Source: Tubulanus polymorphus
Lineage: Eukaryota > Animalia > Nemertea
Assembly: GCF_964204645.1 (NCBI RefSeq)
Contig: NC_134034.1
Span: 10,614,962 to 10,678,961 of the forward strand
Direction: 5' to 3'
DNA length: 64,000 nt
The position numbers and the translations under genes were made by a program. Of this stretch, positions 9,101-62,200 are shown piece by piece; position 1 is the first letter of the stretch, and every line of letters begins with the position of its first letter. The notes under the pieces were generated by a model, which was given only the letters and a program-made list of their open reading frames with translations, searched no databases and had not been told where the DNA came from.

Positions 9101-10601
9101 ACCGCCGTATATGGGTGTCGGCTACGGCTGTAGGAAGAACGGCACTTTCGCGGTGGATTTGAAGCATACCGTATTCCAAATCGACATGACGGTAAGAGAA
9201 AATTAATGATCAGATGAAATTGGGGGTTTTATTTGTGATGCCGTCGATATTTAGAGAATCAGGGAACTCGGTAGTGTTGAGACTGCTATAAATATTTTAC
9301 TGAGTTCAGAATCAGGGAACTCGGTAGCGCGTTGAGACTGCTGTAAATATTTCACCGATTTGAGAATCAGGGAACTCGGTAGCGTGTTGAGACTGCTGTA
9401 AATATTTCACTGAGTTGAGAATCAGGGAACTCGGTAGCGCGTTGAGACTGCTGTAAATATTTCACCGAGTTGAGAATCAGGGAACTCGGTAGCGCGTTGA
9501 GACTGCTGTAAATATTTCACTGAGTTCAGAATCAGGGAACTCGGTAGCGTTGAGACTGCTGTAAATATTTCACCGATTTGAGAATCAGGGAACTAGGTAG
9601 CGCGTTGAGACTGCTGTAAATATTTCACTGAGTTGAGAATCAGGGAACTCGGTAGCGCGTTGAGACTGCTGTAAATATTTCACTGAGTTGAGAATCAGGG
9701 AACTCGGTAGCGTGTTGAGACTGCTGTAAATATTTCACCGAGTTGAGAATCAGGGAACTCGGTAGCGCGTTGAGACTGCTGTAAATATTTCACTGAGTTC
9801 AGAATCAGGGAACTCGGTAGCGTTGAGACTGCTGTAAATATTTCACCGATTTGAGAATCAGGGAACTAGGTAGCGCGTTGAGACTGCTGTAAATATTTCA
9901 CCGAGTTGAGAATCAGGGAACTCGGTAGCGTTGAGACTGCTGTAAATATTTCAACGATTTGAGAATCAGGGAACTAGGTAGCGCGTTGAGACTGCTGTAA
10001 ATATTTCACCGAGTTGAGAATCAGGGAACTCGGTAGCGTGTTGGGACTGCTGTAAATATTTCACCGAGTTGAGAATCAGGGAACTCGGTAGCGCGTTGAG
10101 ACTGCTGTAAATATTTCACTGAGTTCAGAATCAGGGAACTCGGTAGCGTTGAGACTGCTGTAAATATTTCACCGATTTGAGAATCAGGGAACTAGGTAGC
10201 GCGTTGAGACTGCTGTAAATATTTCACCGAGTTGAGAATCAGGGAACTCGGTAGCGTTGAGACTGCTGTAAATATTTCAACGATTTGAGAATCAGGAAAC
10301 TCGGTATTAAGGGGGTATTTTAATATTTGTGTAGTCTCTAATCTGGCGATTCGTTTCTACTCCACAGAGAACCGAATGGGAACCGTTCCAGATCGAGGAC
10401 AGTGAACCGTATCGGAATATATTCTCACAAGAGAAACAAGACGTCACCGGTTTCTGCAGAAATATGGCTGGAAATGGAAAGTGTGGAGGATGTCGACCAA
10501 AAAACGGCCGCATCTATATCAAATGTGCGTATAAGGACTTCAGCGATGAAAACTTTGGGTGGGACTGTGGCAAGCGAGGGTTCCGCGGCAATCCGCCATA
10601 A
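113..10601 (+). CDS. Multi-exon gene (5' end outside window): at least 11 EGF-like repeats followed by two tandem GON domains
   Basis: AG/GT-bounded, frame-preserving phase-1 exons each encoding one 6-Cys EGF (e.g. CNGIDCGNGTCIENWDNRTHHCLCNEGYEGTNC): 113-229, 706-822, 1103-1219, 1732-1851, 2216-2314, 2411-2536, 3032-3142, 3220-3363, 4045-4161, 5085-5201, 5526-5651. Then exons 5838-6064, 6622-6690, 6782-6880, 7550-8002, 9048-9191, 10335-10601(TAA) give two copies of the GON pattern (GCQNL..DGEYEI..IYCKHM..PEEFLTL..FHRIRIDI..YGEVAEC..GEFSIDLTGT..VSGFCGGNCGGCWP; SCSEL..DGTFQL..FYCNNM..PEEYLIL..YNKVRVNL..GTFAVDL..GFC..CGGCRP). Confidence 0.9.
2575..2997. repeat. Intronic minisatellite (~42 bp unit, cagttccacagttgtgtgggttt.atttgactctgaac)
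   Basis: About ten degenerate direct copies; same family recurs at about 37390-37650. Confidence 0.8.
4240..4337. repeat. (CAC)n microsatellite
   Basis: Directly visible; source of the spurious poly-P, poly-T and poly-V ORFs. A shorter run resumes at about 4830-4857. Confidence 0.95.
6222..6555. repeat. Intronic minisatellite (aaaaatggctgcctacataaatcccc.atgacgtcatcaaattgcctattgaaatg)
   Basis: 4-5 tandem copies; related reverse-complement arrays at about 36880-37060, 39710-39990, 48780-48930 and 54260-54500. Confidence 0.8.
8206..8364. mobile_element. Tc1/mariner-pogo-like MITE
   Basis: TA followed by TIR cagtggaacctcg ... cgagcttccactg. Confidence 0.6.
8821..8960. mobile_element. PIF/Harbinger-like MITE (ggggcc.gttcca TIRs, internal ttaagaccagtct repeats)
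   Basis: TIRs ggggccggttccatagtc / gactgtagaactggcccc; further copies at about 39110-39370 (tandem pair), 47815-47955 and 55600-55845; internal motif amplified as minisatellite at about 41790-42065 and 48045-48260. Confidence 0.65.
9255..10306. repeat. 55/53 bp minisatellite, about 19 near-identical copies filling the last intron of the EGF-GON gene
   Basis: Unit gagaatcagggaactcggtagcgcgttgagactgctgtaaatatttcaccgagtt; period 55 (9362 to 9417); no unique spacers. Confidence 0.95.
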
Positions 10602-10974: not shown

Positions 10975-11089
<115 letters not shown>

Positions 11090-12155
11090 TTAATTTTGGA
11101 ACTGTTTAGACGAAAGCTGTAACTGTAATAAGGTTTTCGTATTCTTGTGTCTATCTCCAAGTAGAATTGTTTAAATTTAACAGAATAGAAATATCTCCCT
11201 GGTAGAAAACGATTTGTTGCTTTGTTGATATATGAATGAACCCCCCCCCCCCCGTCTCCGCAGTATTGTGTTAGTATGCCCCCCCCCCCCAGAAAAATTA
11301 AGGGTCCAGCTAGCTTTCAAGTGATAGAGAGTAAGAGATTGGAAAATGTACTGATCGCATAAGCCTAGCGACCTACCGTAGATAGTATTATAGCCACATC
11401 GAGAAACTCACCACAGAAAGCGTCTCCCAAAAGCTGAATTCAAAAGAAATATTCTGCAATTCGAATAAGTATCAAACTGCCCTAGTAAAATTCCACCGTA
11501 CTGCATTCGACTGGAAGAGAACGATTCGTTATCCATGTTTTATTCTCCTCGGTAACGATGAAACCCCTGCGCCCCCAGCAGTGGAACTTATATTACAATT
11601 CCCAGATCTTCCCACTCAACTCAAGTTAAACAATCCCAATCGTACACCGATATAGTGATGTCATTCAAAAGCACGGGTAAATATCCCTACACTCCTGACA
11701 TCGACCTCTAGAGAGACTTCTAAACGTCTTGTCCTCCGTTTTTAATTTTTGATTTTTTTTTGAATAATGCGTATTCGTTTAAGACCTTTGAAATTTGTTC
11801 ACCCAGTGAGTTTAAATCGTACCATATCGATACCATTATCGTCCTAGTATACCGGTTTATTGCTTTGACTTGTTAGTACGTCACCGGATTTTGTACCAGC
11901 ATCAGTTCATTCGTACATGATCTATCTACGACAGCTGTAAACTAATGTCCCGAATTTGACTGTGTCCCAACCGAACCGATGGTCGTTTAAAGCGCAATTG
12001 GATTAGAAAATTAAGCGACAGATTTTAGTAGCGGGCGGGATTCGATAGTTTACATTCGGGTCAGAAGGATACAAACCACGTTGAACGATAAGCAAGCAAC
12101 GAAAAGGTAAGCGAAACAAAAACGCGATGATCGTCTGCCAATCCGCATGTGCCAT

Positions 12156-12305
12156 CACAGGGGCTCGTATCAGAGTTGTAGGTAATGTAAAAACGATAAT
12201 CTGTTAATCCTATGTCTATAGTATATATATATGTATAAACTATAGACACACGATTAACTGATTATCGTTTTTACATTACCTACAACTCTGATACGAGCCC
12301 CTGTG
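12156..12305. mobile_element. Near-perfect palindromic MITE (~150 bp) upstream of the CapA ATG, probably in a 5' UTR intron
   Basis: cacaggggctcgtatcagagttgtaggtaatgtaaaaacgataatc... exactly inverted at ...gattatcgtttttacattacctacaactctgatacgagcccctgtg. Confidence 0.75.
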
Positions 12306-12453
12306 GGTGCCCTGTTTAATCAATTTTGAACCAAGTCGAATCGATAAATTATTAGCTTTATGGAAACTTTTCTGACTCGCGTATTCTTTCTCGTTTTAAC
12401 AGTTTTATCAGTGAGGGTTGTTTCTATTTGATTGATTAGAGATTTTCTTCAGA

Positions 12454-14195
12454 ATGCCTCCTCATCGCTATCAGCAGTTGTTCGTCGCCTGTGCCTTTTT
12501 GGCGTTCGTTTATTACGTCATAGTCCACCGTGGATCTCCGGCGATGGTTTCCGATGATGCCCGAACACCGCCGAAGACGATATCGATGGTATTTACGGGT
12601 GACATCATGGCGCACCGGAACATAACGCGATCGGTGTTCGACGAGAAAACTCAAACTTACGATTACAACCCAATATTCAGGTAACTTTATTTCAATGTAA
12701 CTGAATGTGAAGTGTGGACGATCGGTTTTTGAAAGTTTGCTAATAAAATGTATAATTTCTGGTGTTTCTGGTTTCAATCAAAAATATCTCAGGTAAAGTT
12801 CGGAACACATGTGAAGTGTTGATGAACAGCTTTTGAAAGCACGCTGATAAAATATCTAAAGTCTAGCGTTTTTAGTTCATTTTCAATCAAAAATATCTCA
12901 GGTAAAGTTCGGAACACATTTGAAGTATGGGCGATCAGTTTTTGAAAGTGAGCTGATAAAATGTCTATTGTCTGATGTGTGTAGTTAATTTTCAATAAAC
13001 AATGTCTCAGGTGAAGTACTGAACACATGACCCCGAGTGTGGTCTATCAAAAATTGACAGACACAAGTACCAAAAGCCCGAGAGGGAGCGGGTCCATTCT
13101 ACTTCATTTCAATAAATCAATCTTTATTCTCCGTTTAGGTTTGTTAAGCCAAAATTAGCAGAAACTGATTTTGCGATCGGCAATCTTGAATGTGCAGTCG
13201 GTTCTTCTCCGGATGCGGACTTGGCGAACGGCCATTTTACGATAGTCGTACCGCCGTCGTTCGTCGAAGCTTTACGTAACGCCGGATTTGACGTTCTGGT
13301 TACGGCAAACAATCACGCAAACGATGGAGGAAAAGCGGGTGTCGTCAAAACGAGCGAAACTCTGGACGAATTCGGCATCAGGCACACGGGAGCGTTCGTC
13401 GACGGTGACGCGCGTCGGAGACTCTCACCGTTATTACTCGAGAAGGACGGGTTCCGTATCGCGCTGCTGGCGTTCACCAGACACACGCCGTCAGAACTCG
13501 ATATGGAACCGCCGACCGAAATGAACTATCTCGAAGAAACGACTATTCGTCGCGAGGTGGAACGCGCTAAAAACATGAACGTCGACCAGATCATCGCCTT
13601 CGTGCACTGGGGTCTAGAATACCAGGAACACCCCGATTACTACTTCCAGAAATTGTGGTTTAAATTCTTCAAAGAACTCGGCGTGAATATAGTGATCGGG
13701 GCTCATTCTCACGTGCTACAACCGATGGTTTGGGATAAAAAGGACGACTCCTTGGTCGTGTATTCGTTGGGTAATTTCCTAGCCGATATGACCTATAAAC
13801 TTCCATCGCTGAAAGGAGCGGCCATTTTTCGCCTGGTTTTGGAAAAGCGCGCAGACGGCAAAGTATCGATTAAAACAGCCGACTACGAGTTGACCTACAT
13901 TCAAAATCGCGCAGCTGGGAATATGAGCCAATCGTCGTTCGCCATTCTACCGGTGAAAGAGTTCGAAAATAATGCTAGGTATTTCGACGATTTGGAATTC
14001 AAGGATGAAGCCATGCGAGTTTCGGCGACGGATATGAGACGGTTGATGGCCGTCGAAACAGTCGGTATACGCGAGCGCCACGCTGAGAATTTCGATCAGC
14101 AAAGCCTAGAGTTCCAGTCGAAATTCCTGCGCATGAAATCGAATACCCCTCCATTTAGAATATGCCCGTCTTTGGAATCGATGGAGAGAAACTAG
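12454..14195 (+). CDS. capA: CapA/PgsA-family (PGA_cap, calcineurin-like metallophosphoesterase) protein, 2 coding exons, 427 aa, N-terminal membrane anchor
   Basis: Exon 12454-12680 (..TTCAG|gtaac) joins exon 13139-14195 (ccgtttag|G) in frame: FTGDIMAH..YDYNPIFR/FVKPKLAETDFAIGNLE..ALRNAGFDVLVTANNHANDGG..HTG..FVHWGLEY..IGAHSHVLQP..VVYSLGNF, the full CapA motif series. Hydrophobic LFVACAFLAFVYYVIV at residues 9-24. Possible 5' UTR intron from gtaag at 12107 to ag at 12452. Confidence 0.92.
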
Positions 14196-14497
14196 GCCGA
14201 CTGCCACGACCATTCGGAGACGTGGCACGGATCATGCACCGGCCACTCGGGATAACGCTGAAACACGAATTCATATTTGAAAGTAAAAAAAACCGGTCAA
14301 TTTCCTCACATACCCTAATGTAGAAAATATTACCAAATCGTAAAATAGATTTTGTGAAGTGTAATATTGTTGAATGATAAAATAAATAGATTTGTTTGAT
14401 GAAAAATTAAACATTGATAGGATCGGTTTCGGTTCGTCGGCGAGATGGATTACAGTAACAGATTTCGATAACGTTTGTTGCATTATATTTCGCCATC

Positions 14498-16430
14498 ATG
14501 GTCCGCACCGGAGCTCATTATGGATTTCGGTTCATTTTCTTGTGGATAACGACCGTTATGACGTCATTAGAAGGTAGGACCAGTTGCACGGCTGGAACTG
14601 AAAAAGACAATATTCTAAGCTAAATGGTCTCATGTGTTATTTGAGCTACGTGAAGGAGGTCAAACCTGAAAATTGTGGTCGTGGCACCTCTCTAGTTGTG
14701 TGGTTATCATTGTATGTGACCACAGTCTGTGAGATCGAGTTCAGGTCGAGACAGCAAACCGACCCTCCACAGACCACTCATGCGCAATCTATAGATTGAT
14801 CAAATAGGTCGGATTTCGATTGTTCTGGTACAAACCAGTATGTGGCGTGTACGACAAAAGGTCTCCGCGTTATTGTGTTGACGGCTCTGTGGGCTCAACT
14901 CTCTACACGAGAACTTCGCAATGAAACGGCGGCTAGAATGCATTTTTCTTGTTGAGCCGGACTCACACGAGGGTCATGGCTGGGTCCAGAGAAACTGGCG
15001 AAACTTCTGTGGCAATCGAGGATTCCAGTGATTATGGTTTTGCGTGAACCATAACTCAATTTCATATGTTTGACTCCTGAGTTAAATTACGTCAAATTTT
15101 CAAATAAGAGATAGAGTCGAATTTAAGTTCTAAGACTGTGGAACTGGTTGTGTATTTATTCATTTAACGCATTTTTTCAGCGAATGGTTTGAAGCCGTCT
15201 GGTATGTACGGTAGAAGATACGGCGATTGTAACGGGTATGATATTGGACCGGTTAGAAGCGATAATTTCACCAAGTGCATTGACGCGTGTGACGCCTCGT
15301 CCAGATGTACCGGTCTAGCTGTATTTAAACATAAACGGCCGTTCGAATGCTGGTTGAAATATCGTAATTGCCCGGATTTGAACGCGCAAATGTCGGTGTA
15401 TTTCTTCGAGAAGCTGTACCGCAACGACGGTAAGTCGCACGATACGGAAAAATATCGGTGGCAAGGTGAAGGTTACTGCAATACCGAGTACTAGCAGATG
15501 AGATTTATTTTCGATGGAGCGACTCTCGTTTGAAACGTATATAGCGTTTAGAAAATGATACTTTAGAATTTCAAACCTATTGTGTCGATTTAATGAATAA
15601 GCAGTCTAATTATTGTATTTAGAACGACTGTATTTTCTTCTCAAGTTCCCAAATATTCCAGGCGAGAGCGTTAAACCTTCCTTGTCGTGTTTTTTTAGCT
15701 GTGAATAAATTTTCAAATCTCCGTTTACCCAAAACCGATAGATCCATGCCTCGCCTGCGATGTGTAAGGCAACGAACTACATTTTATTTTTGATTGTAAC
15801 TTATCATCGAAAACTGCTCGAATTTGGACACCTTTAAGAACTCGATGTTGTAAAAGATCCAACATTGCAACTGGTTTAATTCGTCTCGGTCTAGATGTAT
15901 ATAGATCCTTCAATAGTGTGTATTTTGAAAAATAGTTCGTTTTAAATGGCGTGTTTTATATTCTAAATGCTTTTATTTTTGCGTTTTCAACTGCGAATGC
16001 CTTTTTCCTTCACATATTATGGAAATTGGTTTGAGTGTAATAGATATTTGTATGCGGTGGCTTATGGTCGTGGTAAGGTCTTCCGATAGGCAGGGGGGGG
16101 GGTTCCTGACCTAATACACGTCCAGTTTCCATAGATTTGTTAATATTCAGCATAATTTTTCTTTTCGTAGACGCGGGTAGAATCTTCAAATATGGCGTGA
16201 ACGCAGCGATGCCGGGGGTTATTTCACAGCCGCTGAAACCCGGAGTGACGTACACGCGTTTTAACGACGCTGTCAGTTGTTTATTGAGTTGCAGTCACGA
16301 TTCGAATTGTTACTCGTCGAATTATCGATCGACAACGAAAGAATGTTACACGTACAGTTTGCAACATTTCTACGACGTGCGCCCGATAACAGCGACCGGT
16401 TGGACTTTATACTACGTGTACTTGTGGTAG
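14498..16430 (+). CDS. Secreted two-PAN/apple-domain protein, copy 1
   Basis: Exons 14498-14573 (gccatcATGG; signal-like MVRTGAHYGFRFIFLWITTVMTSLE), 15181-15429 (GDCNGYDI..KCIDACDASSRCTG..ECWLK..C) and 16171-16430 (SCLLSCSHDSNCYSSNY..ECY..GWTLY); all phase 1 with GT/AG. Confidence 0.85.
14641..14975 (+). ncRNA. Candidate structured intronic RNA or conserved element, copy 1 (others 17327-17650 and 23024-23347)
   Basis: No conserved ORF; roughly 90% identical among the three paralogs by eye; many nested complementary segments (see findings). No known family recognised. Confidence 0.35.
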
Positions 16431-17186
16431 ACGGTGAGATACACTTTCCGGCCATCCTGAATGCTTCACGAAATTCTCAAACATATCTAAGAAAAGGATA
16501 AGTCTGGTTAAGGCCATGTTCACCCGTCAAGGGATTCGAACCCACTACGCTAAAGCTGTTCTCCGAACCCCTTGACCTCACGAGTCGTTGGAGTCGTTAC
16601 TAGCCGACCAGAATCCGGTCGTACCAATCACAGCGCTTGTTACAAACGACTTTAGGCTTCTATTGGTTTTCCCGTTAAATAGACCAATCAGCGAACGTTT
16701 TACTGAACAAGGAAGTATTTCGCAAATCGATATATGACGTCATGCGCAACAGCGCCAGTAATGAAACCACGCTTCGTGAGGCCAGGGGGCTGGTGGAAGC
16801 GAGTTCGGGAGTGATACCTGACCCCTGGCAAGCGAGGATGGGTTAAAGCTTCAAAAAATTTTCAAAATCCGAATAATCATCTTAGCCAAATATGGCTGTG
16901 CGCTCTGGTTGGGATATATTATAAATCGGTGAACGGTCTTTTCTATCAGCTGAAAAAATAATTGACACTTTCCTTGATTAATAAAAAAATATGCGCGCGT
17001 GCGCAGACTACGAATTCACTGTCGATGATGGAAATTTAATCGAACATTTGATTTCAAAACAAAATGATTTTAATGAGAAATTAAATATTCATAGCATCGG
17101 CTTCGACAATAAACATTGAGAATTAATATCATTCATACATCATTTTGGTCAACTTGTGTTGAGTTTGATTTGCAATTTGTGTCATT

Positions 17187-18793
17187 ATGTTCCGCGGCGG
17201 AATTTGTTTAGGAGGATTTCAACACTTATTGTGGATAACGGTCGTTATGACGTCATTAACAGGTAGTATACACGGACCAGTTGCAAAAAACGGCCGTCTT
17301 AGCTATATTGTTTCATGCAGCAGTGTTTGAGCTACGTGAAAGAGGTGAAACCCAGAATTGTGGTCGTGGCACCTCTCTAGTTGTGTGGTTATCATTGTAT
17401 GTGACCACAGTCTGTGAGATCGAGTTCAGCTCGAGACGGCAAACAGACCTTCCACAGACCGCTCATGCGCAATCTATAGATTGACCAAATAGGTCGGATT
17501 TCGATTGTTCTGGTACAAACCAGTTTGTGGCGTGTACGACAAAAGGTCTCCGCGTTATTGTGTCGACGGCTCTGTGGCCTCAGCTCTCTACACGAGAACT
17601 TCACAATGAAACGGCGGCAAGAATAAATTGTTCTTGTTGAGCTGGACTCATATAGGTGCAACTGGGCCCAATGAAAAAAAGAGTGGTTAATGTTAACACA
17701 ACATGTGGCAAATCCACCCGAAGATTCTAGGATTCTACTTTTGGTATGTGGATCCACCAGGTGCACCAGTAGTAATTCCGTTTCCCATACTTAAATTTCT
17801 GTTAGCTTTCAATGGGGACCGGCCAATGTTACTTCGGCAAGCGAGTATTCACTAGGTGCACGAGTAGTTTAGTCGGCATTCGGGATTTTGACTTCTTCAA
17901 TATTTCAATCGATGAAAAATCGAATCGACTTTTTTTAAAATTTCAGCTAATGTTTTGAAGCTGTCGGGTAGGTACGGTAGAAAAGACGGCGATTGTTATC
18001 ATCATGATATAAGTCTGGTGAACGCCGATGATTTATCGAAGTGCGAAGACTCGTGTGACGCCTCGTCTAGGTGCCGCGGTTTTGTGGCGCTTAAAGGTAG
18101 TCCGCCGTACCGATGTTGGTTGAAAGATTACAAATGTACGAATTTGACGAAGAAATCGGTGGCAAATTTCTACGAGAAACTCGATAGTAATGACGGTGAG
18201 TCACGTGATAGGAGAAGGGGGGTTAGCAGCCGAGACATGCAAAGATTCTGTGAGAGGAATTTTAACAATTGCAGCGAAATCCAAATAGGATTTGAAAAGG
18301 GAAAGTTTATTGAGACCATACCGTTTCGTCATCAGCTGCTGGAATATAACTTTTTCATCTTTTTCAGCACTAAAATCTTGTTTTTTAATTTTGGTTTTAT
18401 TTGACTAATATTTAACGTTTGACTTGTCGCATATCGGTGTATTTTGAGGCCGTCGGGGTTTACCTGACCCGATATACGCCTTCTTTCTGTAGATTTCATC
18501 GTTAAAAACTATCATATTTTTTTCTTTTCGTAGACGCGGGTAGAATCTTCAAATATGGCGTGAACGCGGCGATGCCGGGGGTTATTTCACAGCCGCTGAA
18601 ACCCGGAGTGACGTACACGCGTTTTAACGACGCTGTCAGTTGTTTATTGAGTTGCAGTCACGATTCGAATTGTTACTCGTCGAATTATCGATCGACAACG
18701 AAAGAATGTTACACGTACAGTTTGCAACATTTCTACGACGTGCGCCCGATAACAGCGACCGGTTGGACTTTATACTACGTGTACTTGTGGTAG
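17187..18793 (+). CDS. Secreted two-PAN/apple-domain protein, copy 2
   Basis: Exons 17187-17262 (MFRGGICLGGFQHLLWITVVMTSLT), 17947-18195 and 18534-18793; same lengths (76/249/260) and phases as copy 1. Confidence 0.85.
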
Positions 18794-19924: not shown

Positions 19925-20923
19925 TCAAATAAAGCGCCACCAACAACACATTTTCGAATACCAAGTTTTGAGCGCGTGATAGCGTTGCCTCAGAGAGGCT
20001 CGGATTTCCCTCCCGGTTACAACATAGATATAGAAATTAATGGCGTAATTCCAGCCGTAAATCATGTACGAAATCCGAAACGCTAAACCTGACGGAGCGA
20101 CGTTCGGGTTGATCCACGCCGTCATCCAGATAACGCTGGTCGGGAAACTGAGCAGCAGGAACAGAACGCACGTCGCGGCCACCGTAACCGACACCGATGA
20201 CGTAGTAGCTCGGGTTTTAGCGTTCACGCGTTGATTACGCGTCAACGTCAAAACGATCAACGTCGTCGAGACGACTATAATCGTGCACGGTACGAGCAAG
20301 GTGCACGTGATGTCCAACGATTTCATGAAAGTGGAATCGGTCGTATGAACGCAGCCGACTCCTTCCACGTAGCGAATGAACAACGCTTCCGAACTGACCA
20401 CCGACAACCCGACTTGCACCAGAACGTACGTCGTCGAAATCAGTTTCGCCGCCGTCGAATTCCAAAATCGCGGCGCTCCGAACGGAAATCGCACGATACA
20501 CATCCGTTCCAGCGACACGACGCAAAGCACGTTCGGACTCAGCGCCGTGAACACCATCAACATCGATTCCGCCAGTATACAACTGATACTGCTGCGGCGA
20601 ATTTCTATAAGAACGTCAAGAGTGACGTGGCGATACAGCGCGTTCAGATACATCAGTAAAAAGAAGAACAACATCCCGCTATCGGACACGGCAAGTGCGA
20701 GAAACATTTGGCCGTAAAGTTGTCGGCGGAATTTGGCCGTCGACATCAAAGCGACGACGAACGCGTTACCAATCAACCCGAGTACGGCGATCGCGAGCGT
20801 GTTTAAGCCATACATAACTACGTAAATGGTCGCGTCGTGTTTAGAACCAACGAACATCGTATCCGTGATGGATAAGGCGTAAATCGGTGACGTCTTATTG
20901 GTGGCTTCAGTCCTTTTTGACAT
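19925..20923 (-). CDS. Intronless class A (rhodopsin-like) GPCR, orphan peptide-receptor-like, 332 aa
   Basis: Seven hydrophobic segments; GLIGN (TM1), LALAVSD (TM2), Cys at top of TM3, SLERM..VRFP (DRY-like), ECL2 Cys, LLVP (TM5), FLLLSFP (TM6), NYAINFYIY (TM7). Confidence 0.93.
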   Translation of the reverse strand: MSKRTEATNKTSPIYALSITDTMFVGSKHDATIYVVMYGLNTLAIAVLGLIGNAFVVALMSTAKFRRQLYGQMFLALAVSDSGMLFFFLLMYLNALYRHVTLDVLIEIRRSSISCILAESMLMVFTALSPNVLCVVSLERMCIVRFPFGAPRFWNSTAAKLISTTYVLVQVGLSVVSSEALFIRYVEGVGCVHTTDSTFMKSLDITCTLLVPCTIIVVSTTLIVLTLTRNQRVNAKTRATTSSVSVTVAATCVLFLLLSFPTSVIWMTAWINPNVAPSGLAFRISYMIYGWNYAINFYIYVVTGREIRASLRQRYHALKTWYSKMCCWWRFI

Positions 20924-50200: not shown

Positions 50201-53200
50201 TATAAATAAATGTCCTCCGTGGTTAATAAATTAAAAACATTTCTTATTTCAAATAAATCTCGGATGGACAGAAATAGTCTAATCGAAACCGAAGGTGAAC
50301 AGAATTTTTGTTATCAATTGTCATTATTGTGGGCTTTCTCTACATATTGCACAGAGGTTTTCATGCAATAAGATAAAAACCCACTATCTACAGATTAAAA
50401 GAATTTAAAAAACAAGAATTTATTTATTCAATCTAAAATATATAGAATACACGACGTTTCGATCTCACCCTACAGATCATCGTCAGGTGTGTACGTCGTG
50501 TATTCTATATATTTTAGATTGAATAAATAAATTCTCGTTTTTAAATTCTTTTAATCTGTAGATAGTGGGTTTTTATCTTATTATCCGCTCACCACGTTTG
50601 AGTGGTGGTTATCGTTCTATTAGGTTTTCATGCACTTACCCAGGGACCCAGGACGAGGCCACAGCTACAGAACTATCAGTTATGATGCGCCCTTTACTCG
50701 CTGAGAACGTACTGTTCAGTTCGCTGGAGGCCTTGAATTGACCATCACCGAATATTGCTTTGTTACCGAGACCAAGCGGCTCGGTACAATACGCCGGAGT
50801 GGGAACTATCTCGGTAGTAGTTTCAGGAACTATCTCGGTAGTAGTTTCGGGAACTATCTCGGTAGTAGTTTCGGGAACTATCTCGGAAGTAGTTTCGGGA
50901 ACTATCTCCGTAGTTGTTTCGGGAACTATCTCGGTAGTTGTTTCGGGAACTATCTCGGTAGTAGTTTGAGGAACTATTTCCGCAGTAGTTTGAACTCCTT
51001 CAGTAGTTGTTTGAGAAACTGTCTTGGTAGTTGTCGTTCTGGGTCGAACTGTTTTTTCTTCCTCCGGCGTCACTTCGCCGTTTCCAGTAGGAGCGATAGG
51101 AAGCTCGGTTGTCGTAGTCGGCTGTTCGCATGAACAGTAATATCGTATCATGTAATCGTTTTTACAGCCACCTTTGTTTTGAGAATGAAGACATTTCAAC
51201 CCGTCGGACACCGTACACGTAGCCACGTCGTTGGTATCCGTGAACGAGATATTAGGTTTACCGGCGACCGAACATTCAATATCCGTTATAAAACCTTTCA
51301 GACACATCAGTTCTTTCTCTTCCTTGGATATTGATTCCACATCGCCCACACTTTCAGCTGAAAGATTTCTATTGTGGTTGATATACGGGGACCAGAAATC
51401 ACATATTTTAGACGTCGTAGTAGTTTCCGTAGACGCAGTTGTTGGAGGCACAGTTTCAGCAGTTGGAGGAACCGTTTTTGCAGTAGTTGGGGGAACAGTT
51501 TCTGCAGTTGTTGGAGGAACAATCTTTTCAGTTGTTGGAGGCACAGTCTTTTCAGTTGTTGGAGGAACTGTTTCTGCAGTTGTTGGAAGAACAATCTTTT
51601 CAGTTGTTGGAGGCTCAGTCTTTTCAGTTGTTGGAGGAACTGTTTCTGCAGTTGTTGGAGGAACAGTCTTTTCAGTTGTTGGAGGCACAATCTCGGCAGT
51701 TGTTGGAGGCACTGTCTTTTCAGTTGTCGGAGGAACTGTTTCTGCAGTTGTTGGAGGAACAGTCTCTGGAGTTGTTGGAGGAACTGTCTTTTCAGTGGTT
51801 GGAGGCACAGTCTCGGCAGTTGTTGGAGGCACAGTCTCGGCAGTTGTTGGAGGAGCTATTTTGGTAGTTGTTGTAGCAACTATTTCTCTAGTGGTTGGAG
51901 GGATGGTCGTCGTGGTTATTTCTGTAACACATAAAACGTTACTCGACTTACTTTGAATCAGGTGTCATGATTTGGTAAAAAGTAAAAGCATGGAATAGTC
52001 AAGATTGAATTGTTTTGCTCATCGAAAACTATGAAGTAACCAACAGCCATTAACCAAAAAACTTTTTAGTTTAGATATTTTGCGAAGCTGCATTTTCAAA
52101 ACTAAAAGAGTAGTGATGTTTAGACTCAATTCTACGAGCCATTTTCAAAAACTAAGACAGTAGTGACGTTAAGACTCAATTCTATGAGCCATTTTCAAAA
52201 ACTAAGAGAGTAGTGACGTTTAGACTCAATTCTATGAGCCATTTTCAAAACTAAGAGAGTAGGGACGTTTAGACTCAATTCTATGAGACATTTTCAAAAA
52301 CTAAGAGATTAGTTATGTTTAAATTAAAGCCTATGAACCATTTTCAAAATTCAGCTTTGAAAATGGCTCATAGGATTGAGTCTAAAAGAGGCCAGCAGAA
52401 GCCAGCGCCTAACACTTATCTATCTTTCTTTTCCATCTCATTTGGATGCAGCAATGTACTTTACCGATACGGATACATTATCTACAGAGATGAAACTTCA
52501 AAACGTACCTTCACAAGAACAGAAATATCTCATCATGTAATCATTTTTGCATCCACCTTCGTTATATTTATCGTTACATTCGAGTCCGTTTTCGAGGTCG
52601 CACGTCACATTTTCTCCTCCGACCGTGTACGACTTGCCGGCGAATCGAGCCAGACGACACTGCACCTCCGTGAACGTACCGTCGCACGCGCGTTTTTCGT
52701 CGGGCGTCAACTTCTCGAAATCGCCTCCGATCAAACGCGAACGCGGTTTATCGCGATTCAACCACGCCGTCCAGTAGTCGCAGCGTGGTGGCGCCACCGT
52801 CGTTTCCGTTGTCGTCGTAGCGGCTGGGGGAGTCGTCGGGATCGTCGTGTAACACGAACAGAAAACGCGTAATTCGTAATCGTGACACGGGAAGTCCGAC
52901 GGTAGATCGGAGTTTTTGCAGACGAGCCCGCTCGTCGCGTCGCACGTCACGCTCGGTTGACCGGTGTAGACGTGCGAAACGTGCGACTTACTGTCGCGGC
53001 ATTCAACGCGGTCGGGCGCCGCGCAGAATTGATATTTCATGCGAAGGTTTTCGAACGTTTCGAAATCGCCGGCTTTCGACGGGGTCATCGAGTTCATCCA
53101 CGGCGACCAGCCGTGTACGACGCATTCCGGAGGGAACGGAGTCGGAGCAAGCGTGGTAGGTGGCGCCTCGGTTGTTGTTACTAGAAAATAGTGAAATAGA

Positions 53201-56200
53201 AAACAATCACTCCTTGTTACGAGCGTGTTGAAACATGAATCCCTTTCAGTGCGGTGTATCAATCACACAACAAAATGCGGTGTATAAATCAGTTATGGAC
53301 TTGGCTATTACACCGCATCGTGATGTATTGTTGTAATTAGTTATCATCTCTGTTGAAAGATGGCAGCACCTGCCATGCAATGTTAAGTATTAGGAACTAA
53401 CGGTACATCGCACCGTGGTGTAGATGCGCCATAACGGTATGCCCATTATACAACGCACAAGGGTGGAATTTTGCAAAATTCTAAATTTATCTCCAGCACT
53501 TCGGGGTAAGAATTGGTCAACACCGAAGGGTTAAACTAAAATGTAACGTGCTTCTTTACAGTTAAAGTGAATTTAAATGTAGCGTGCCGAAATTAAACAT
53601 GTGAAATTAATCATTTAACCCTTTCAGTGCATCTACACCGCAGTGCGGTGTATAAATCAGTGATAGATTTTGCTAGTACACCGCACTGCGGTGTATTGAT
53701 GTAATTAGTAATTATCTCTCTTGAAAAATGGCAGCCCGTGTCAAACATAGTGAAATACTAGTAACTAATGATACACTGCACCGCAGTGTAGACGCACTAT
53801 AGCGGTATTCCCGTTGTTCAACACACTAGGGCGGAATTTTTTAGAATTTTCAAATTATCTCCAGCACTATAGGGTATTAATTAGTCAGCACTGCAAGGGT
53901 TAAAAGTGAAATGAACTACGACAAGCACACGTACGTATGAACTGAAATGTACTCACAACTTTCGCTACAAATCAGCAAATCGAATCTCAAACTCGCTTCT
54001 CCGTGCATCGTTTTCGGAATAATTTTGATGCACTTCGTATCAAATTCATAATCGAACAGCGAAAATATCGGCGTCGATTTGTCGTTATTACCGACGAAAA
54101 CCTGTCGACGAAGATAACATTTACAACCAGCCCGGTCGAAGCATTTTCTGCGGAACGTTTCAAGAAGTTAGTCTAATTCAAAATGAAGTCGGATAATTCA
54201 AATATGAGGACCGAAAAGAGGGATAATAGACGATGACATCTTTTTCTCCAAGGATTTATAGATAATTTGATGCTATCATAGGGAACTTAATGGAGGCAGC
54301 CATCTTTATCTGCAAGGTTTTCGAGATCAAATTTGATGATGTCATAGGGGGAGTATAAAGAAGTTACTATCTATTCGGTAAGGGTTTATGGGCCAAATTT
54401 GATGATACCATCGAGGGACTTTACATGTAGAATGAGAATCTTTTCTGGAAAGGTGGATTGAATTTGAGGACATCATACGTGGATTTACTGAGAGCGGCCA
54501 TCTTGTCCGTACCTGTTGAGATCCATCTGGTTTGCGAATCGGCGAAAATTTATCGCAGCGATCATTGCCGACAGCGACTGTGTACGACTCGGTCCACTGC
54601 GCCAAATCCTGGCGTCCGCGCGTCACCAAGCCGATAACACGTACAGGCCTCGGGTACTGAACGCCGATCCAAGGGCGCGTATCGTGAGTACGCGCCGTCC
54701 ACCCGCCGAATCCGCTCGAGTCGGCGGCCGCGCGCAGACGAGCGCGATGCGGACCATGGCGCATGTCGTTGTTGTACACGGTCGACGCCGAGTAATTCTC
54801 ATCGGCGACGGTTAGAACGTCACCAGCGAGAACGACGTCGCAAGCTGTAAATATTATAAACAAATGATTGACATTTTCAAACATATTTCATGTATTGAAT
54901 CTTTAGCCCTTTCAGTGCGTCTACACCGCTGTGCGGTGTATGAATCATGATGGATTTTGCTAGTACACCTCACTGCGGTGTATTGATGTAAATAGTAATT
55001 GGTTTTTATCTCTATTAAAGACGGCAGCAACTGTCAAACAGTGAAATACTAGTAACTAACGACACACCGCGCCGCGGTGTAGACGCACTATAGCGGTATT
55101 CCTGTTAATTAACACGCTAGGGTGGAATTTTTCAAATATTTTAAATTATCTCCAGCACTATAAGGTATTTATTAGCCAGCACTGAAAGGGTTAATAAAGG
55201 CCACTTTTGTTTGATTTGGTCTTTCCCAGACATGCGCGCTGTTTTCACTGATTTGATCTGCTCGGAATCCAATCAATGGACACAGTCAAATACGTAAAAC
55301 AAGGACGGAAACTGTCGCTGACTTTTACCTATTTAGGTAGAATCTCAACAAATATCTATGATTTTTAGCTTTTTAACAAAATTACTGGCTTTTTTCATGA
55401 AAATTTCAAAGTGACTTTTCCCCGATTTCCAGGTGAGTGTGGCCAACCTGTTTTTAACCCTCTTGAAAAAAACAATCAAAATATTCTTTCATCCATCAAA
55501 CTAAAAAACTATCAAAGACTAAAAATCAAAGTATCGAAAAGAATTCTTCACGAAAAGTGTTTCAACCATTTAATTTAATCATTCAAAGTCATGGTTAAGA
55601 TTAACGACCAGTCTAAGACCAACCTACTTCTATAGTCAACCTAACAACTTGAGACCAGTCTTGAGATTTAAGACCATTGGACTTAAGTCAAGACTGTGCA
55701 ACTGGGGCCGGTTCCATAGTCAGGTTTTAAGACCAAAAGTGGTCTTAAACCTTAAGACTGGTCATAAGTTCTTAGATTGGCTATAGAATTAAGTTTGTCT
55801 TAGACCGGTCTTAAGTCAAAGCCTTGTCTATGGAACTGGCCCCAGGGCCCCAGGGTGTGAGCAAGGGTGAATACTCAAGCCCAGCATTCGCTTGAGCCGA
55901 AATGGCACAGCTTTTACCGGACAGGATCGACCCCTCAAAAATTAGGCTTGGAGAGAAATGCATCGAAATAACATACCCGCAGACGCGCATTGACAGTAAA
56001 CTCGTACTTCGTAATCCTGGCACATTCCGTGTTTCTGCTTTTCATTTTTGCACGACAATCCGTCGTGGACGGTGCAGCTGACGTTCCGGTCGCCGGCGAA
56101 ATGCGTGTTCGCCTTGCTACCGGCGGCGCGACACTGAATCTGCGTGATTTTGTCAGCGCTGCAGAACACGTTCGGGTGATTCTGAAAAATCGTGCGATAG

Positions 56201-59200
56201 TAAGTTTTTTATCGCGAGAAAAGAAAACGATCGATAAAAAAGTAAAAGATGAATTTCACGATGAAATGAGGTTTACCTCGATTGAATCTATAGTTTCAAA
56301 GTCGCCTGATCCGTATGTCGGCTTATCTGTGTTCAACCACGGCGTCCATCCGGTTGATATACACGGCTTTACTGTAGTAATTGGAGGAACAGTTTGCGCA
56401 GTTGTTGGAGGAGCTATTTTGGTAGTTGTTGGAGGAATTATCTCTTTGGTTGTTCCAGGAACTATCTCTGTAGTTGTTTGAGGAACTATTTCAGTAGTAG
56501 TTCCAGGAACTATCTCTGCAGTTGTTGGAGGAACAGTTTGCGCAGTTGTTGGAGGAGCTATTTTGGTAGTTGTTGGAGGAATTATCTCTTTGGTTGTTCC
56601 AGGAACTATCTCTGTAGTTGTTTGAGGAACTATTTCAGTAGTAGTTCCAGGAACTATCTCTGTAGTTGTTTGAGGAACTATTTCAGTAGTAGTTCCAGGA
56701 ACTATCTCTGTAGTTGTTTGAGGAACTATTTCAGTAGTAGTTCCAGGAACTATCTCTGCAGTTGTTGGAGGAACAGTTTGCGCAGTTGTTGGAAGAGCTA
56801 TTTTGGTAGTTGTTGGAGGAATTATCTCTTTGGTGGTTTCAGGAACTAGCTCTGTAGTTGTTTGAGGAACTATTTCAGTAGTAGTTCCAGGAACTATCTC
56901 TGTGGTTGTTTGAGGAACTATTTCAGTAGTAGTTCCAGGAACTATCTCTGTAGTTGTTTGAGGAACTATTTCAGTAGTAGTTTCAGGAGCTATCTCTGTA
57001 GTTGTTTCAGGAACAGTTTTCGAAGTTGCTGGAGGCACAATCTTTTCAGTTGTTGAAGGAACAGCCTTTTCAGTTGTTGGAGGCACAGTTTTTTCAGTTG
57101 TTGGAGGCACAATCTTTTCAGTGGTTGAAGGAACAGCCTTTTCAGTTGTTGGAGGCACAGTTTTTTCAGTTGTTGGAGGCACAATCTTTTCAGTTGTTGA
57201 AGGAACAGCCTTTTCAGTTGTTGGAGGCACAATCTTTTCAGTTGTTGAAGGAACAGCCTTTTCAGTTGTTGGAGGAACTGTCTTTTCAGTTGTTGGAGGA
57301 ACAGCCTTTTCAGTCGTTGAAGGAACAGTCTTTTCAGTTGTTGGAGGAACAGTCTTTTCAGTTGTTGGAGGAACCGTTCCTGGAGTTGTTTGAGCTATTT
57401 TTTCAGTTGTCGGAGTAACTGTTTCGGCAGTTGTCGGGGGAACAGTCTCCACAGTTGTTTGAGCTAACTTTTCAGTTGTTGGAGGAACAGTCTTTTCATT
57501 TGCTGCTGTTGTAACAGCGTTTCCAGTAACTGCAGTAGGCAGCGCCGACGTCGTCGTTTCCAGTGACTCGCACGCACAATAATACCTCACCCTGTAATCA
57601 TCGCAACCATCGGAGTTTTCCGCATTTCTACAGACGGACCCGTCTTCTAGAGTACACGTCGTGTTTTCATTCGTCATATAAACCGAATCGTTCGGCTTCG
57701 AGGCGACTTTACATTCGATATCGGTGATGAATCCGTGAGGACACAACGTATTCTTTTCGTTCTCGGTCATGAATTCGAAATCACCGGCCCCCGAATCAGG
57801 ACTATCACGGTTAAAATAACGAATCCAAAAATCACATTTCAACGTAGTTGTTGGAGGCACTACCTTAGTGGTAGTTGGAGGCACAGTCTCTGCTGTTGTT
57901 GGAGGCACTGTCTTTTCACTTGTTGGAGGAACAGCCTCTGCAGTTGTTGGAGGCACAGCCTTTTCAGTTGTTGGAGGAACTATCTCTGTAGTTGTTTGAG
58001 GAACTATTTCAGTAGTAGTTTCAGGAACTATCTCTGTAGTTGTTTGAGGAACTATCTCTGTAGTTGTTTGAGGAACTATCTCCGCAGTTGTTGGAGCAAC
58101 AGTTTTTGCAGTTGTTGGAGGCACAATCTTTTCAGTTGTTGGAGGCACAGTCTTTTCAGTTGTTGGAGGCACAGTTTCTGCTGTAGTCGTAGGAACTATC
58201 TTGATAGTTGTTGGAGGCACTATTTTTGTCGTTGTTGGAGGAACTTTTTCAGTTGTAGTTCGAGGAACTGTCGTGCTAGTAGTTGCAGGAGGAACTATCT
58301 TTGTGGTAATGGCCACTGGAGTTGTCGATACTGTTGAAAGAACAAAAATAAACAACCTTTGACTGAAGCAATGAACATAAATCAAATCAATGAAGTCGAA
58401 ATAAGATTTACAACCGCGCAGCTGTGGATGTCGTCGATTTCTTACCAGGAGCACATTGACACTGGACGCTGATCTCCCAGTCGAAACATAATCCAATAAG
58501 TTGACCTACTGAATGACATATCATACCGACGTCCTTGTTGCAGACAACGTTTAGCACCGAACCAGCTTTCTTAAGCTCTCCCTGTTGCTCTTTGCATTTG
58601 ACTTGTGTGATTTGATCATTCGAACAAAATGCATACTTAGTCCTGCGAAAAATGGAGACAATATCAATCTATATTCAATATCTTCTTAAGAATTTGTCAT
58701 TTTCCACATTCATGCTTCCTGTTTAACCCTATCAGTGCTGACTGATTAATACCCGAAAGTGCTGGAGATAACTTTCAAAGGATTCCACCCAAGAGTGTTG
58801 AATGACAGGCATGCCGCTATAGTGCGTCTACTACGCAGTGCGTTGTATCATTAGTTACTAATATTTCACTATTTTTAACAGGTGCTAATTGCTAACATTA
58901 AAATAAATTTCTAACATTAACCCTTTCAGTGCGTCTACACCGCAGTGCTGTGTACGAATCAGATTTAATTAGTAATTCCTAATTATCTCTCTTGAAAGAT
59001 GGCAGCACCTGTCAAACATAGTTAAATATTAGTAACTAACGATACACTGCACCGTGGTGTAGACGCACTATAGTGCTATTCCCGTTATTCAAAACACTAG
59101 GGTGGAATTTTTCAGAATTTTCAAATTATCTTCAGCACTATAGGGTATTAATTAGCCAGCACTGAACGGGTTAATACTCCATGATGCAGTGTACTAGCAA

Positions 59201-62200
59201 AGGCCATTACCGATTTATACACCACACTGCGGTGTAGACACAATAATATTTTCGGTGTTGACGTAATAAAACGTTTTGAAAAATCTTTGCAAAATTTCTC
59301 CATCAAGTGCTTTTTTTCCACCAAATTTCAACGGAGAATGAAATACTGACCTCAAGTTTCCCCAGATTTTATTGCCGGAGATGCCGGCAGACGGATTCAC
59401 AGTCATCCACTTCGTCCAGCCCGGAGTACAGATCGGAGCGTGCGTCGTCAGCGGTTGCGTCGTCAGTTCCGGCGTCGTCGTACACGGCACCGGTGTTTTC
59501 TTCACTTTGCCATTTTCACCGCAGAAACTATCGAAATAGAAATATTGAATGTTATGAGAGCGCAAGTCTCTCTGCGACTTCCTAAATCCCTTATGAACAA
59601 TTAAGCTTGAGACAAAAATTCCAACGTGTTCTGCGTCAAATAAGAACACCGAGAAAAAAGATGGCGGATTTCACCAGTGACTAAATGCGATACCACAGGG
59701 CTGGGTCATATAGAAACGCCTTGGGCGATCACTCCAAATTTAGAAAATGTTTGCAAAAAACATAGTTAAGGGTACTCAAGGAAATAATGAATTTACTCAA
59801 AGTACTCAAAGGAAATAATGACTTTAGCAGTGGTGAGATTGATGCAGAGTGGATTAGGACATTTTTCACATCATCATTTTTTTCACACATTTTCACCGTA
59901 GAAAAGCTGGTATTTTTCACATTTTAAGGAAAAAACAGCGAGAAGCTGCAACCTTGCCTCTCACGATGGCAAAACAGCACTTAGTTGCTAGGGGCAAAGG
60001 TATCAGGATCTACAAAATTCATGTTTAAATGAAGAGGGGCTCTAAAGATAGCATATTCGGTAGAAAAGCACCTCAAAATTTTCAGCAAACAAACTTTCAC
60101 AAATTTTTTGAAATTTTTTTTTTCATAGAAATTTCAACTGTTATCAAATTTTTCGCATCAATCTCGCTCCTGATTTTGTTAAAATGAAAGAAAATTTTGC
60201 GACCCAGAAAAAATAATCTCCTACCAGATATAACACGGTGGGCAGACGCTTTCATCGAAAATTTGTTGACCTTCCGTGTAATTTTTGCCGTTCACGCGAC
60301 AAACACTCTTGCAGTCTTTCTCCTTGACGCAGACGGCCGGTCGAGATGAATTGTGATAAACCTGTCCGGGCGGACACGGCTTCGGGGTGCAGCCCTCCAA
60401 ACACATCTGCAACACGAGGAAAGTAGAACAGTTGCATTCAGAAGTGGCGAATAGATAATAAGATTAAAAGCTATGGTTACGTATGTTTTTTCAAGGGAAT
60501 ACAGCTATTGAAGGGAATACAACTATTGAAGGGAATTCAGCTATATATATATCTTTATTCATAACAATGTTACAAGTTGAAAAATAGAAAAGTCAAAGGG
60601 AATACAGCTTTTGAAGGGAATACAGCTATTTCTACAGCAGCATGGGAACAGTCCTCCCCCCTGCGAAGGTTACCTACCTCTTCTTTACAAGTTTGCGTTA
60701 TTTCTTTGTAGACGTTCTTGTTTTCGCATGTTTTCACCGGACACTGACTGATGCACGGCTTGTAGTTCTCGCATTCCTCGTCGCATTGCATGGCTGTAAC
60801 AAGCGCATAAAGAATTCTCAATGTTTCAAACAAAATTTTCCATATTCATACGTATACTCTATGAAGTTTAAGTCTACTTGGACCCAGTTCCACAGTTGTG
60901 AGTTGAGATTTGACTTTGTTAACTCGTTGAAGATGAACTAATCTTAACTCTGAGTTCCTGAAATCCTGGAACTCATTTCGTGGGATATTTTGCTCAATTT
61001 CAGTTTGTAGGCTAAAAAGAATCGCATTGTTAAACTTGGGAGTCTCTTTTCTCTAATTCAACTTGAGTAAAAGAAGACTTTTCAACAGTCCTTCAACTGA
61101 GTGTAAAACGCATATAAAAACAATGGTTTATTCACACTGCATGTACAGTTTTCCTGGTCAGTTTTAACACCGACTCATCGTAACTGTAACTGTCATTTTC
61201 AAATAAAAACTGTGAAGACGGGCGGAAATATTCTCCCGGAAACGTTAGCAAAACTTTTGAAAATACGATATTCATTAAGACCAGAAACAGTCTCCTACTG
61301 TATATTTACACTGATTTAAGGTGATTAGTCCTAAAATTGAGCCGAATATCCCGGTATAGAAACTTGTTGCAGCGATTAAAAGTTGAACTTACGGCAGAGT
61401 CCTTGGTGGCGCCAGCTAACCGCGATACCGTTGGCGGCGCACTTGTCGGCGTACGTGCCGATCGCCGTGCACAGACATTCGCAATCGCCGCCCGAATCGC
61501 ACGAACACGAATCGAAAACACAACGTTCGTAGAATCCGTCGACGGGAATCACCGCGCGGCACTAAAACAAACGGGAGAATTCGTTCAGCGTCGAACATTC
61601 TCAAATTCTCTATTTGAAGCCCCCCCCCTGAAAAAGCTTTCGACACCGTAACGAAGAACCCGAATCCTACCTTTTCGAACGTTTCAGTTTTGAGAACGCC
61701 GCACTGCTGTTTGGCCCACGTTTCTCGTTCGGGGTGTTCGCAGACGAGCGCCACTTCTTCGGAATCGCCGCACGAGGTCGAATGCTACGATTTCAGAAAC
61801 GAAAAATTCATTCAACATGAGTAATGAAAACCATTCGATATGACGATATATGACCTTTCCAAATCTCTTTCAGGCAGGTTCAGGCAAGTTGGAAGCTGGT
61901 ATGCCTGAACCCGAACTGAAATTTCCATGAGCTTCGATTCTGTTACACCGATCATCCAACTATACAATATGCACCTAAATTTCCGATTCCTAAATCAACC
62001 TCCTGTATCCTGCTGGCACGTGCAGGGTGACCACTGGCTTGCCTTTTCCCCCTGACTATTCCCTGACTAAGTTTATTTTCCCTGACTCGATCTGCTAAGA
62101 ATCTGATCAATTAACACAATCAAATACGTAAGACATTGACGGAAACTGCTTGATTTTACACTCAATCTCAAACAAATTTCCATGACTTTTCCCTGAAATA

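Follow-up and report, generated by a model that had tools for sequence, protein, structure and literature searches.

The window, by which we mean the whole 64,000-nucleotide stretch of the Tubulanus polymorphus genome that was analyzed, contains a CapA-family gene with two coding exons (Table 1). Joined, the exons make 428 codons, or 427 amino acids and a stop, and without splicing the frame that runs out of exon 1 ends after 76 codons; the original prediction of a 427-residue reading frame split by a GT-AG intron was therefore correct. The ends of this intron are GTAACTTT...TCCGTTTAG, with a pyrimidine-rich acceptor. The exons were searched separately, and exon 2 matched Pfam PGA_cap (PF09587) with an E-value of 1.2e-50 and a score of 172.9 bits, against a curated cut-off of 27. 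As had been claimed, the CapA motifs are intact: GD (residues 49-50), NLE (91-93), NNHAND (133-138), HWG (232), GAHSH (263-267), and YSLGNF (284) are all present. The protein has one hydrophobic stretch, residues 9-25, with a mean Kyte-Doolittle value of 2.3 over its 17 residues, and this would agree with the type II secretory-pathway topology that had been proposed.

Table 1. Features of the CapA gene, in window coordinates.
Feature	Position	Strand	Description
Probable 5' UTR intron	12107..12452	+	Consensus donor AAG/GTAAGC at 12107, acceptor at 12452
Coding exon 1	12454..12680	+	227 nt (75 codons + 2 nt); short N-tail, signal-anchor helix, stem, and first strand with Asp50 and His54
Predicted type II signal anchor	12478..12528	+	Residues 9-25, the sole hydrophobic helix; from hydropathy, topology inferred
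Coding intron	12681..13138	+	458 nt, GT-AG, phase 2, in the Arg76 codon; position common to four paralogues
Coding exon 2	13139..14195	+	1057 nt; remaining CapA (PF09587) domain and C-terminal extension
NLE to NNHAND segment	13182..13325	+	NLE (Glu93), altered pocket loop GHFTI, NNHAND (Asn134, His135, Asp138); alignment to MslH Glu44, Gly60-Leu64, Asn87, His88, Asp91
HWG to YSLGNF segment	13605..13793	+	HWG (His232), GAHSH (His265, His267), YSLGNF then ADMT, where the donor clade has S-x-Q-R
Candidate polyadenylation signal	14381..14386	+	AATAAA; from sequence

Spliced reads had been named as a check on the gene model. No read or contig across 12680/13139 was found in the sequencing runs, which were compared with window positions 11300-15000. 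The splice is backed by an intron at the identical codon and phase in four paralogues, and the RefSeq proteins of three paralogues read across the equivalent site. A join of 12683 to 13167 in genomic run X1 was considered as splicing evidence and rejected, its probable source being paralogue L004, which has a 152-nt intron. Donor/acceptor pairs comparable to those of the putative 5' UTR intron were found 5' of paralogues L001 and L003. Repeats lie within both introns of the window gene. The coding intron contains 2.4 copies of a 109-bp tandem unit (12772-13029) at >1000x single-copy depth in the genomic runs, and a second high-copy repeat occupies approximately 12155-12306, inside the probable 5' UTR intron.

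Animal genes stand on both sides, as the original prediction had stated, with a GON-domain gene upstream and PAN-domain genes and a GPCR downstream. The PAN-domain genes, arranged in tandem at 14498-18400 with an apparent signal-peptide exon, begin 300 nt past the CapA stop. The GPCR is an intronless rhodopsin-family gene on the minus strand (19925-20923) for which a protein search gave no match at E 0.001, and a mucin-like gene, also on the minus strand (50600-59700), has extended Pro/Thr repeats, WxxW-type segments rich in Cys, and exons that resemble discoidin. The GON-domain gene has an intronic 55-bp minisatellite of 19 copies (9254-10306), and an (AT)n repeat lies at 10978-11086. Nesting of the CapA gene within the GON gene was rejected because the latter seems to stop near 10600.

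Read depth in the deepest genomic run was 23-25, a single-copy value that was equal for the exon and both flanks, and contigs from the genomic runs link the intron to exon 2 and exon 2 to 500 nt of flank. Exon 2 has a GC3 of 0.57 and a CpG observed/expected ratio of 1.65, within the ranges of host exons (0.50-0.65 and 1.5-1.8), in keeping with the codon style described earlier and unlike the nearest bacterial genes, in which GC3 is 0.16-0.29. Run X5, which comes from a separate study in 2014, had reads in 8 of 9 exon-2 bins and in 0 of 12 flank bins. Its exon-2 sequence of the window copy is free of differences, including identical 3' pieces, and the intron repeat stood at 13-36x exon depth versus approximately 750-3000x in the genomic runs. 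This coverage suggests that X5, whose library type is not on record, is a transcriptome in which the window copy is lowly expressed. In run X6, taken as RNA by guess, nothing of the window gene region was found.

The window gene belongs to a family. When 5.8 billion proteins were searched, its three best matches were T. polymorphus proteins that RefSeq names "CapA-like", and in exon 2 all three are letter-for-letter equal to loci of the host genome. The genome search for paralogues that had been proposed yielded six CapA copies, which the original prediction had not noticed: four on the contig of the window, one on contig C12, and one on contig C1. Five of the six share an intron of 152 to 681 nt at the identical codon and phase (phase 2), and these five have an N-terminal hydrophobic anchor. 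The C1 copy has no intron at the shared position and appears to keep the bacterial layout, with a cleavable-type signal and no coding intron. The window gene is one of three recent copies; its exon 2 is 77-82% identical to those of two neighbours versus 39-48% for the remaining copies. Within this trio dN/dS was 0.39-0.46, and dS between the trio and the remaining copies was saturated, which argues for an old transfer and moderate purifying selection on the copies. The neighbours of the paralogues are animal genes, among them GPCRs, a homeobox gene, and a CAP-domain gene.

Several features of the family bear on its internal history and annotation. Paralogues L006 and L003 (G000:C10:10049976-10055889) lie head to head, approximately 3 kb apart, yet are 39% identical. 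The window copy (12454-13024) and L003 (L099 2591-3184), which are 570 kb apart, encode identical protein in the latter half of exon 1; the introns of the two can be aligned, and exon 2 of the window copy is nearer to that of L004. Gene conversion or mosaic duplication is a possible reading of this pattern. RefSeq protein XP_074658673.1 (P0121; G000:C10 ~10044800-10051500, L098) joins most of L006 to a downstream CAP/SCP-domain gene, including the signal peptide of the latter and omitting the L006 anchor, and is probably a chimeric annotation. We found no paper on a CapA gene family in Tubulanus. Domestication and expansion of CapA in a ribbon worm are apparently new to the literature, the paralogues having been annotated automatically in RefSeq.

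After the worm's own proteins, the named matches were Bacteroidota, as were 80 of the best 80 bacterial genome loci in an alignment-based search. Marine Flavobacteriaceae proteins that match the C1 copy in length and signal-peptide layout are 52-54% identical to it, and exon 2 of the window copy is 40-45% identical to Flavobacteriaceae relatives. In a maximum-likelihood tree of 49 rows built on exon 2, the six worm copies form one clade (bootstrap/SH-aLRT 84/93) within a group of Aureivirga, Polaribacter, Tenacibaculum, Flavivirga, and Lutibacter (96/94), and the enclosing Flavobacteriales node has support of 99/98. Larger quick trees agree with this one. The claim that a bacterial gene had been domesticated was thus upheld by its nesting in Flavobacteriaceae. 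Conserved columns of the donor clade are kept at 67-69 of 95 positions in the recent trio (67 in the window copy) and at 84 of 95 in the C1 copy. One transfer followed by later duplication would be the simplest reading of the tree: a capA-family gene of a marine Flavobacteriaceae-type bacterium would have entered an ancestor of T. polymorphus a single time and then duplicated to six copies. We consider this history very likely, although monophyly of the six copies is supported at 84/93 only. Protein searches returned no cnidarian, nematode, or other nemertean CapA, and the control for other nemertean proteomes was also empty; ten long-branch representatives were without name or bacterial. A transfer independent of the cnidarian pgsAA event is likely. 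Neither pgsAA nor the nematode gene PolS is in the match lists, which fits a separate transfer; neither was included in the trees.

Among the bacterial relatives, donor-type capA genes stand alone, with no conserved operon. In Cytophagales (L007-L086), capA often follows the DNA-repair pair of Lhr helicase and metallophosphoesterase, with a phosphate transporter and an amidohydrolase close by. A glycan pathway, as read from gene neighbourhood, was not adopted because a GT4 glycosyltransferase precedes two close relatives and not others. A SPOR peptidoglycan-binding domain is present in 13 of the 53 longer relatives, which suggests that the donors work at the cell wall. The bacterial proteins P0135, P0183, P0225, P0245, and P0200 comprise CapA-SPOR fusions and one protein in which CapA occurs twice, together with LRR_5 repeats and a Mur ligase. 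Such SPOR and Mur-ligase fusions hint that stand-alone CapA proteins may act on peptidoglycan.

The fold was predicted for RefSeq paralogue P0002, which is 77% identical to the window copy (pLDDT 85). The model has a helix at residues 2-24 and a calcineurin-like fold whose top match is MslH, with a Z score of 30.6 over 299 residues and an rmsd of 3.2; the next matches are phosphoesterases with Z of 16.9 or less, 14 Z units under MslH. MslH is also the only PDB sequence match of the window protein, at approximately 21% identity, and the MslH family NF038314 is the only NCBIfam match, at 39 bits and so below its 700-bit cut-off, with no lasso-peptide cluster. MslH is a CapA-family peptide epimerase that acts on the C-terminal Trp of a lasso peptide and has a solved structure, PDB 8GQ9 (PMC8179263, PMC10406935); no other relative is both characterised and of solved structure. 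It holds one metal by Glu44, Asn87, His259, and His261, binds the terminal carboxylate of the substrate, and inverts C-alpha via His88/Asp91 and His295/Asp11 (PMC10406935). Its authors proposed that CapA is an epimerase too (PMC8179263). The earlier statement that the biochemistry of the family is unresolved overlooked this enzyme. Bacillus CapA/PgsA was later reportedly shown by Kato et al. in 2024 to be a Glu epimerase.

In a sequence alignment, worm residues Asp50, Glu93, Asn134, His135, Asp138, His232, His265, and His267 fall on the metal-site and His/Asp positions of MslH. The catalytic residues are kept in all six worm copies, and the seven that lie in exon 2 are invariant in 160 of 160 donor-clade proteins. 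The Asn after the Glu ligand, used by the two-metal enzyme YmdB, is absent from the CapA family, as it is from MslH. The donor clade has an additional invariant His, His54 of GDxMxH, that might complete a second metal site and make the protein a phosphoesterase. Within the recent trio, the window copy alone has Ser instead of the otherwise invariant Pro of GxHPH, a change that may weaken its enzyme. In the alignment, the side-chain pocket of MslH (Gly60-Leu64 and Ile319) corresponds to GYPQF and the SxQR Gln of the donors. This donor pocket is retained in the C1 copy, and the window copy reads GHFTI and ADMT. With catalytic residues kept and pocket positions changed, we conclude that the core was retained and the pocket rebuilt towards non-polar. 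Loss of the polar Gln-Arg and of Tyr-Pro-x-Phe from the pocket indicates that the substrate is probably not the bacterial one and probably not glutamate.

The signal peptide, we infer, was turned into a short anchor plus stem, an arrangement seen in Golgi enzymes, and the predicted topology should place the catalytic domain of the five anchored copies in the ER/Golgi lumen or on the cell surface. By analogy with MslH, our best guess, held at a probability of roughly 0.4, is that the window gene encodes a Golgi-type membrane-anchored L/D epimerase. A single metal on Glu93, Asn134, His232, and His265 would bind a free alpha-carboxylate, as in MslH; His135/Asp138 would take the C-alpha proton and His267/Asp50 would give a proton back on the opposite face. 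The outcome would be an L-to-D change in some secreted peptide, at its C-terminal residue, or at a comparable center that bears a carboxylate. The broader proposal is that the Tubulanus CapA family comprises secretory-pathway L-to-D peptide epimerases of bacterial origin, which would give secreted peptides (toxins, or components of mucus or tube) a D-residue at their C-terminus; we regard it as doubtful. Few enzymes are known to introduce D-residues into animal peptides. Against an epimerase, D-amino-acid peptides are not known from nemerteans; a fold shared with MslH shows no function; MslH is of low identity, has its own C-domain, and receives its substrate from MslB1; and the extra His54 could complete a second metal site.

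That extra invariant His also figures in the main rival, which shares the origin proposed here and takes the worm proteins as luminal or ecto-phosphoesterases or phosphodiesterases (or other metal hydrolases) of calcineurin-like fold, which for example would take phosphate or phosphodiester groups off secreted glycans or nucleotides. Nucleotidases and phosphodiesterases make up the fold matches other than MslH, weak Pfam Metallophos matches occur in 20 of 112 relatives, and in Cytophagales the gene's neighbours often include a phosphate transporter and a sulfatase-family gene. However, the nearest clade does not conserve this arrangement, the Asn for the second metal of YmdB is absent, and the lead of MslH over phosphoesterases in the fold search is large. 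We judge this rival serious but somewhat unlikely. The enzymes might instead keep the probable cell-wall substrate of the donors, peptidoglycan stem peptides, and serve defence or digestion in mucus or gut. Export of the donor proteins, the SPOR domains of longer relatives, and the one fusion to a Mur ligase all fit such a role, as does the donor pocket kept by the C1 copy, which this antibacterial reading suits better than it does the window copy. The window copy is membrane-anchored with a rebuilt pocket, the nearest relatives are without SPOR, and the SPOR matches are weak; we give a cell-wall role a small chance.

The original prediction had suggested a polyanionic secretion, with cnidarian poly-gamma-glutamate as the precedent; a role in making poly-gamma-glutamate was not supported. 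Cnidarian pgsAA is a horizontally acquired CapA gene (Denker et al. 2008, cited in PMC5375639), and a worm CapA that helps make or mature such a secretion (mucus, tube, or pseudocnidae), as proposed for pgsAA, would follow this precedent. The family name CapA/PgsA and the type II topology shared with Bacillus PgsA (PMC7490850) also speak for it. The host is a nemertean, a case that had been considered, and tubulanids possess pseudocnidae, but the paper that reports them never mentions glutamate (PMC7897414), and nothing in our analysis ties the window gene to pseudocnidae, mucus, or tube. PgsB is the polymerising subunit, and PgsA by itself gives no polymer in E. coli (PMC7490850). Searches of the worm genome gave no match for CapB/PgsB (TIGR04012 and a CapB protein, exon by exon, so that a heavily split gene could be missed), no PF14102 match for CapC/PgsC, and no RimK-type ligase (intron-split genes could again escape); the earlier observation that the window lacks capB and capC thus extends to the whole genome. 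Both genes were absent above cut-off from five donor-type bacterial genomes, and capC was below cut-off in 61 of 61 related genomes, six of which have a strong match to donor-type CapA. Identity to true operon CapA is only 28-29%, and the polar pocket residues are gone from the window copy. A missing capB is not fatal, since cnidarians make the polymer though only pgsAA is reported to have been transferred. Polyglutamate synthesis by worm CapA is nevertheless unlikely, and we leave the polyglutamate role only a slim chance. Contamination, decay of the copy, or vertical inheritance within animals would be in line with the missing splice junction in reads, the trees without cnidarian and nematode CapA, and the Pro-to-Ser change in a conserved motif. 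These readings have a slight chance, being largely refuted by the contig of chromosome scale, the flanking genes of the host, the intron common to the copies, single-copy depth, host codon use, dN/dS <1, recovery from an animal of a second study, and deep nesting in Flavobacteriaceae. As originally held, the CapA gene is a domesticated transfer physically in the worm genome, neither contamination nor relic.

With the worm included, at least three animal groups have retained CapA-family genes but not the polyglutamate ligase, so the usual name "polyglutamate synthase" must be incomplete. The worm family offers a test set, with one donor-like secreted copy, five anchored copies with changed pockets, and cultivable donors (Aureivirga, Tenacibaculum). 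If the epimerase reading is true, animals would have a new way of making D-amino-acid peptides, and cnidarian and nematode CapA might likewise be epimerases rather than polyglutamate synthases. If the proteins are ordinary phosphoesterases, the family would still be a well-supported example of gene transfer and expansion, though a modest one.

Among known systems, MslH has the same fold as the worm protein, with equivalents of Asp11, Glu44, Asn87, His88, Asp91, His259, and His295 and no second-metal Asn. It differs in its fourth ligand, His261, and in its GHGPH motif, where the worm has HWG and GxHxH, and it is a cytoplasmic RiPP enzyme, whereas the worm protein is membrane-anchored and has the extra His54. 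The stand-alone exported CapA proteins of Flavobacteriaceae are direct relatives in the tree and likewise lack capB and capC; they are uncharacterised and, unlike the window copy, intronless and AT-rich, with a signal peptide in place of an anchor and a conserved YPxF and SxQR pocket. Bacillus CapA/PgsA (capBCADE/pgsBCAE) shares PF09587, an N-terminal membrane anchor, and a catalytic domain outside the cytoplasm, but is only 28-29% identical and has PgsB, PgsC, and PgsE as partners, none of which the worm has. The closest parallels in animals are cnidarian pgsAA and PolS of plant-parasitic nematodes, the latter a horizontally acquired PF09587 gene (PMC4901422): in each, a bacterial gene of this family was retained by an animal without its operon. 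The worm case is set apart from both by a Flavobacteriaceae donor, six copies, the switch to an anchor, and a rebuilt pocket.
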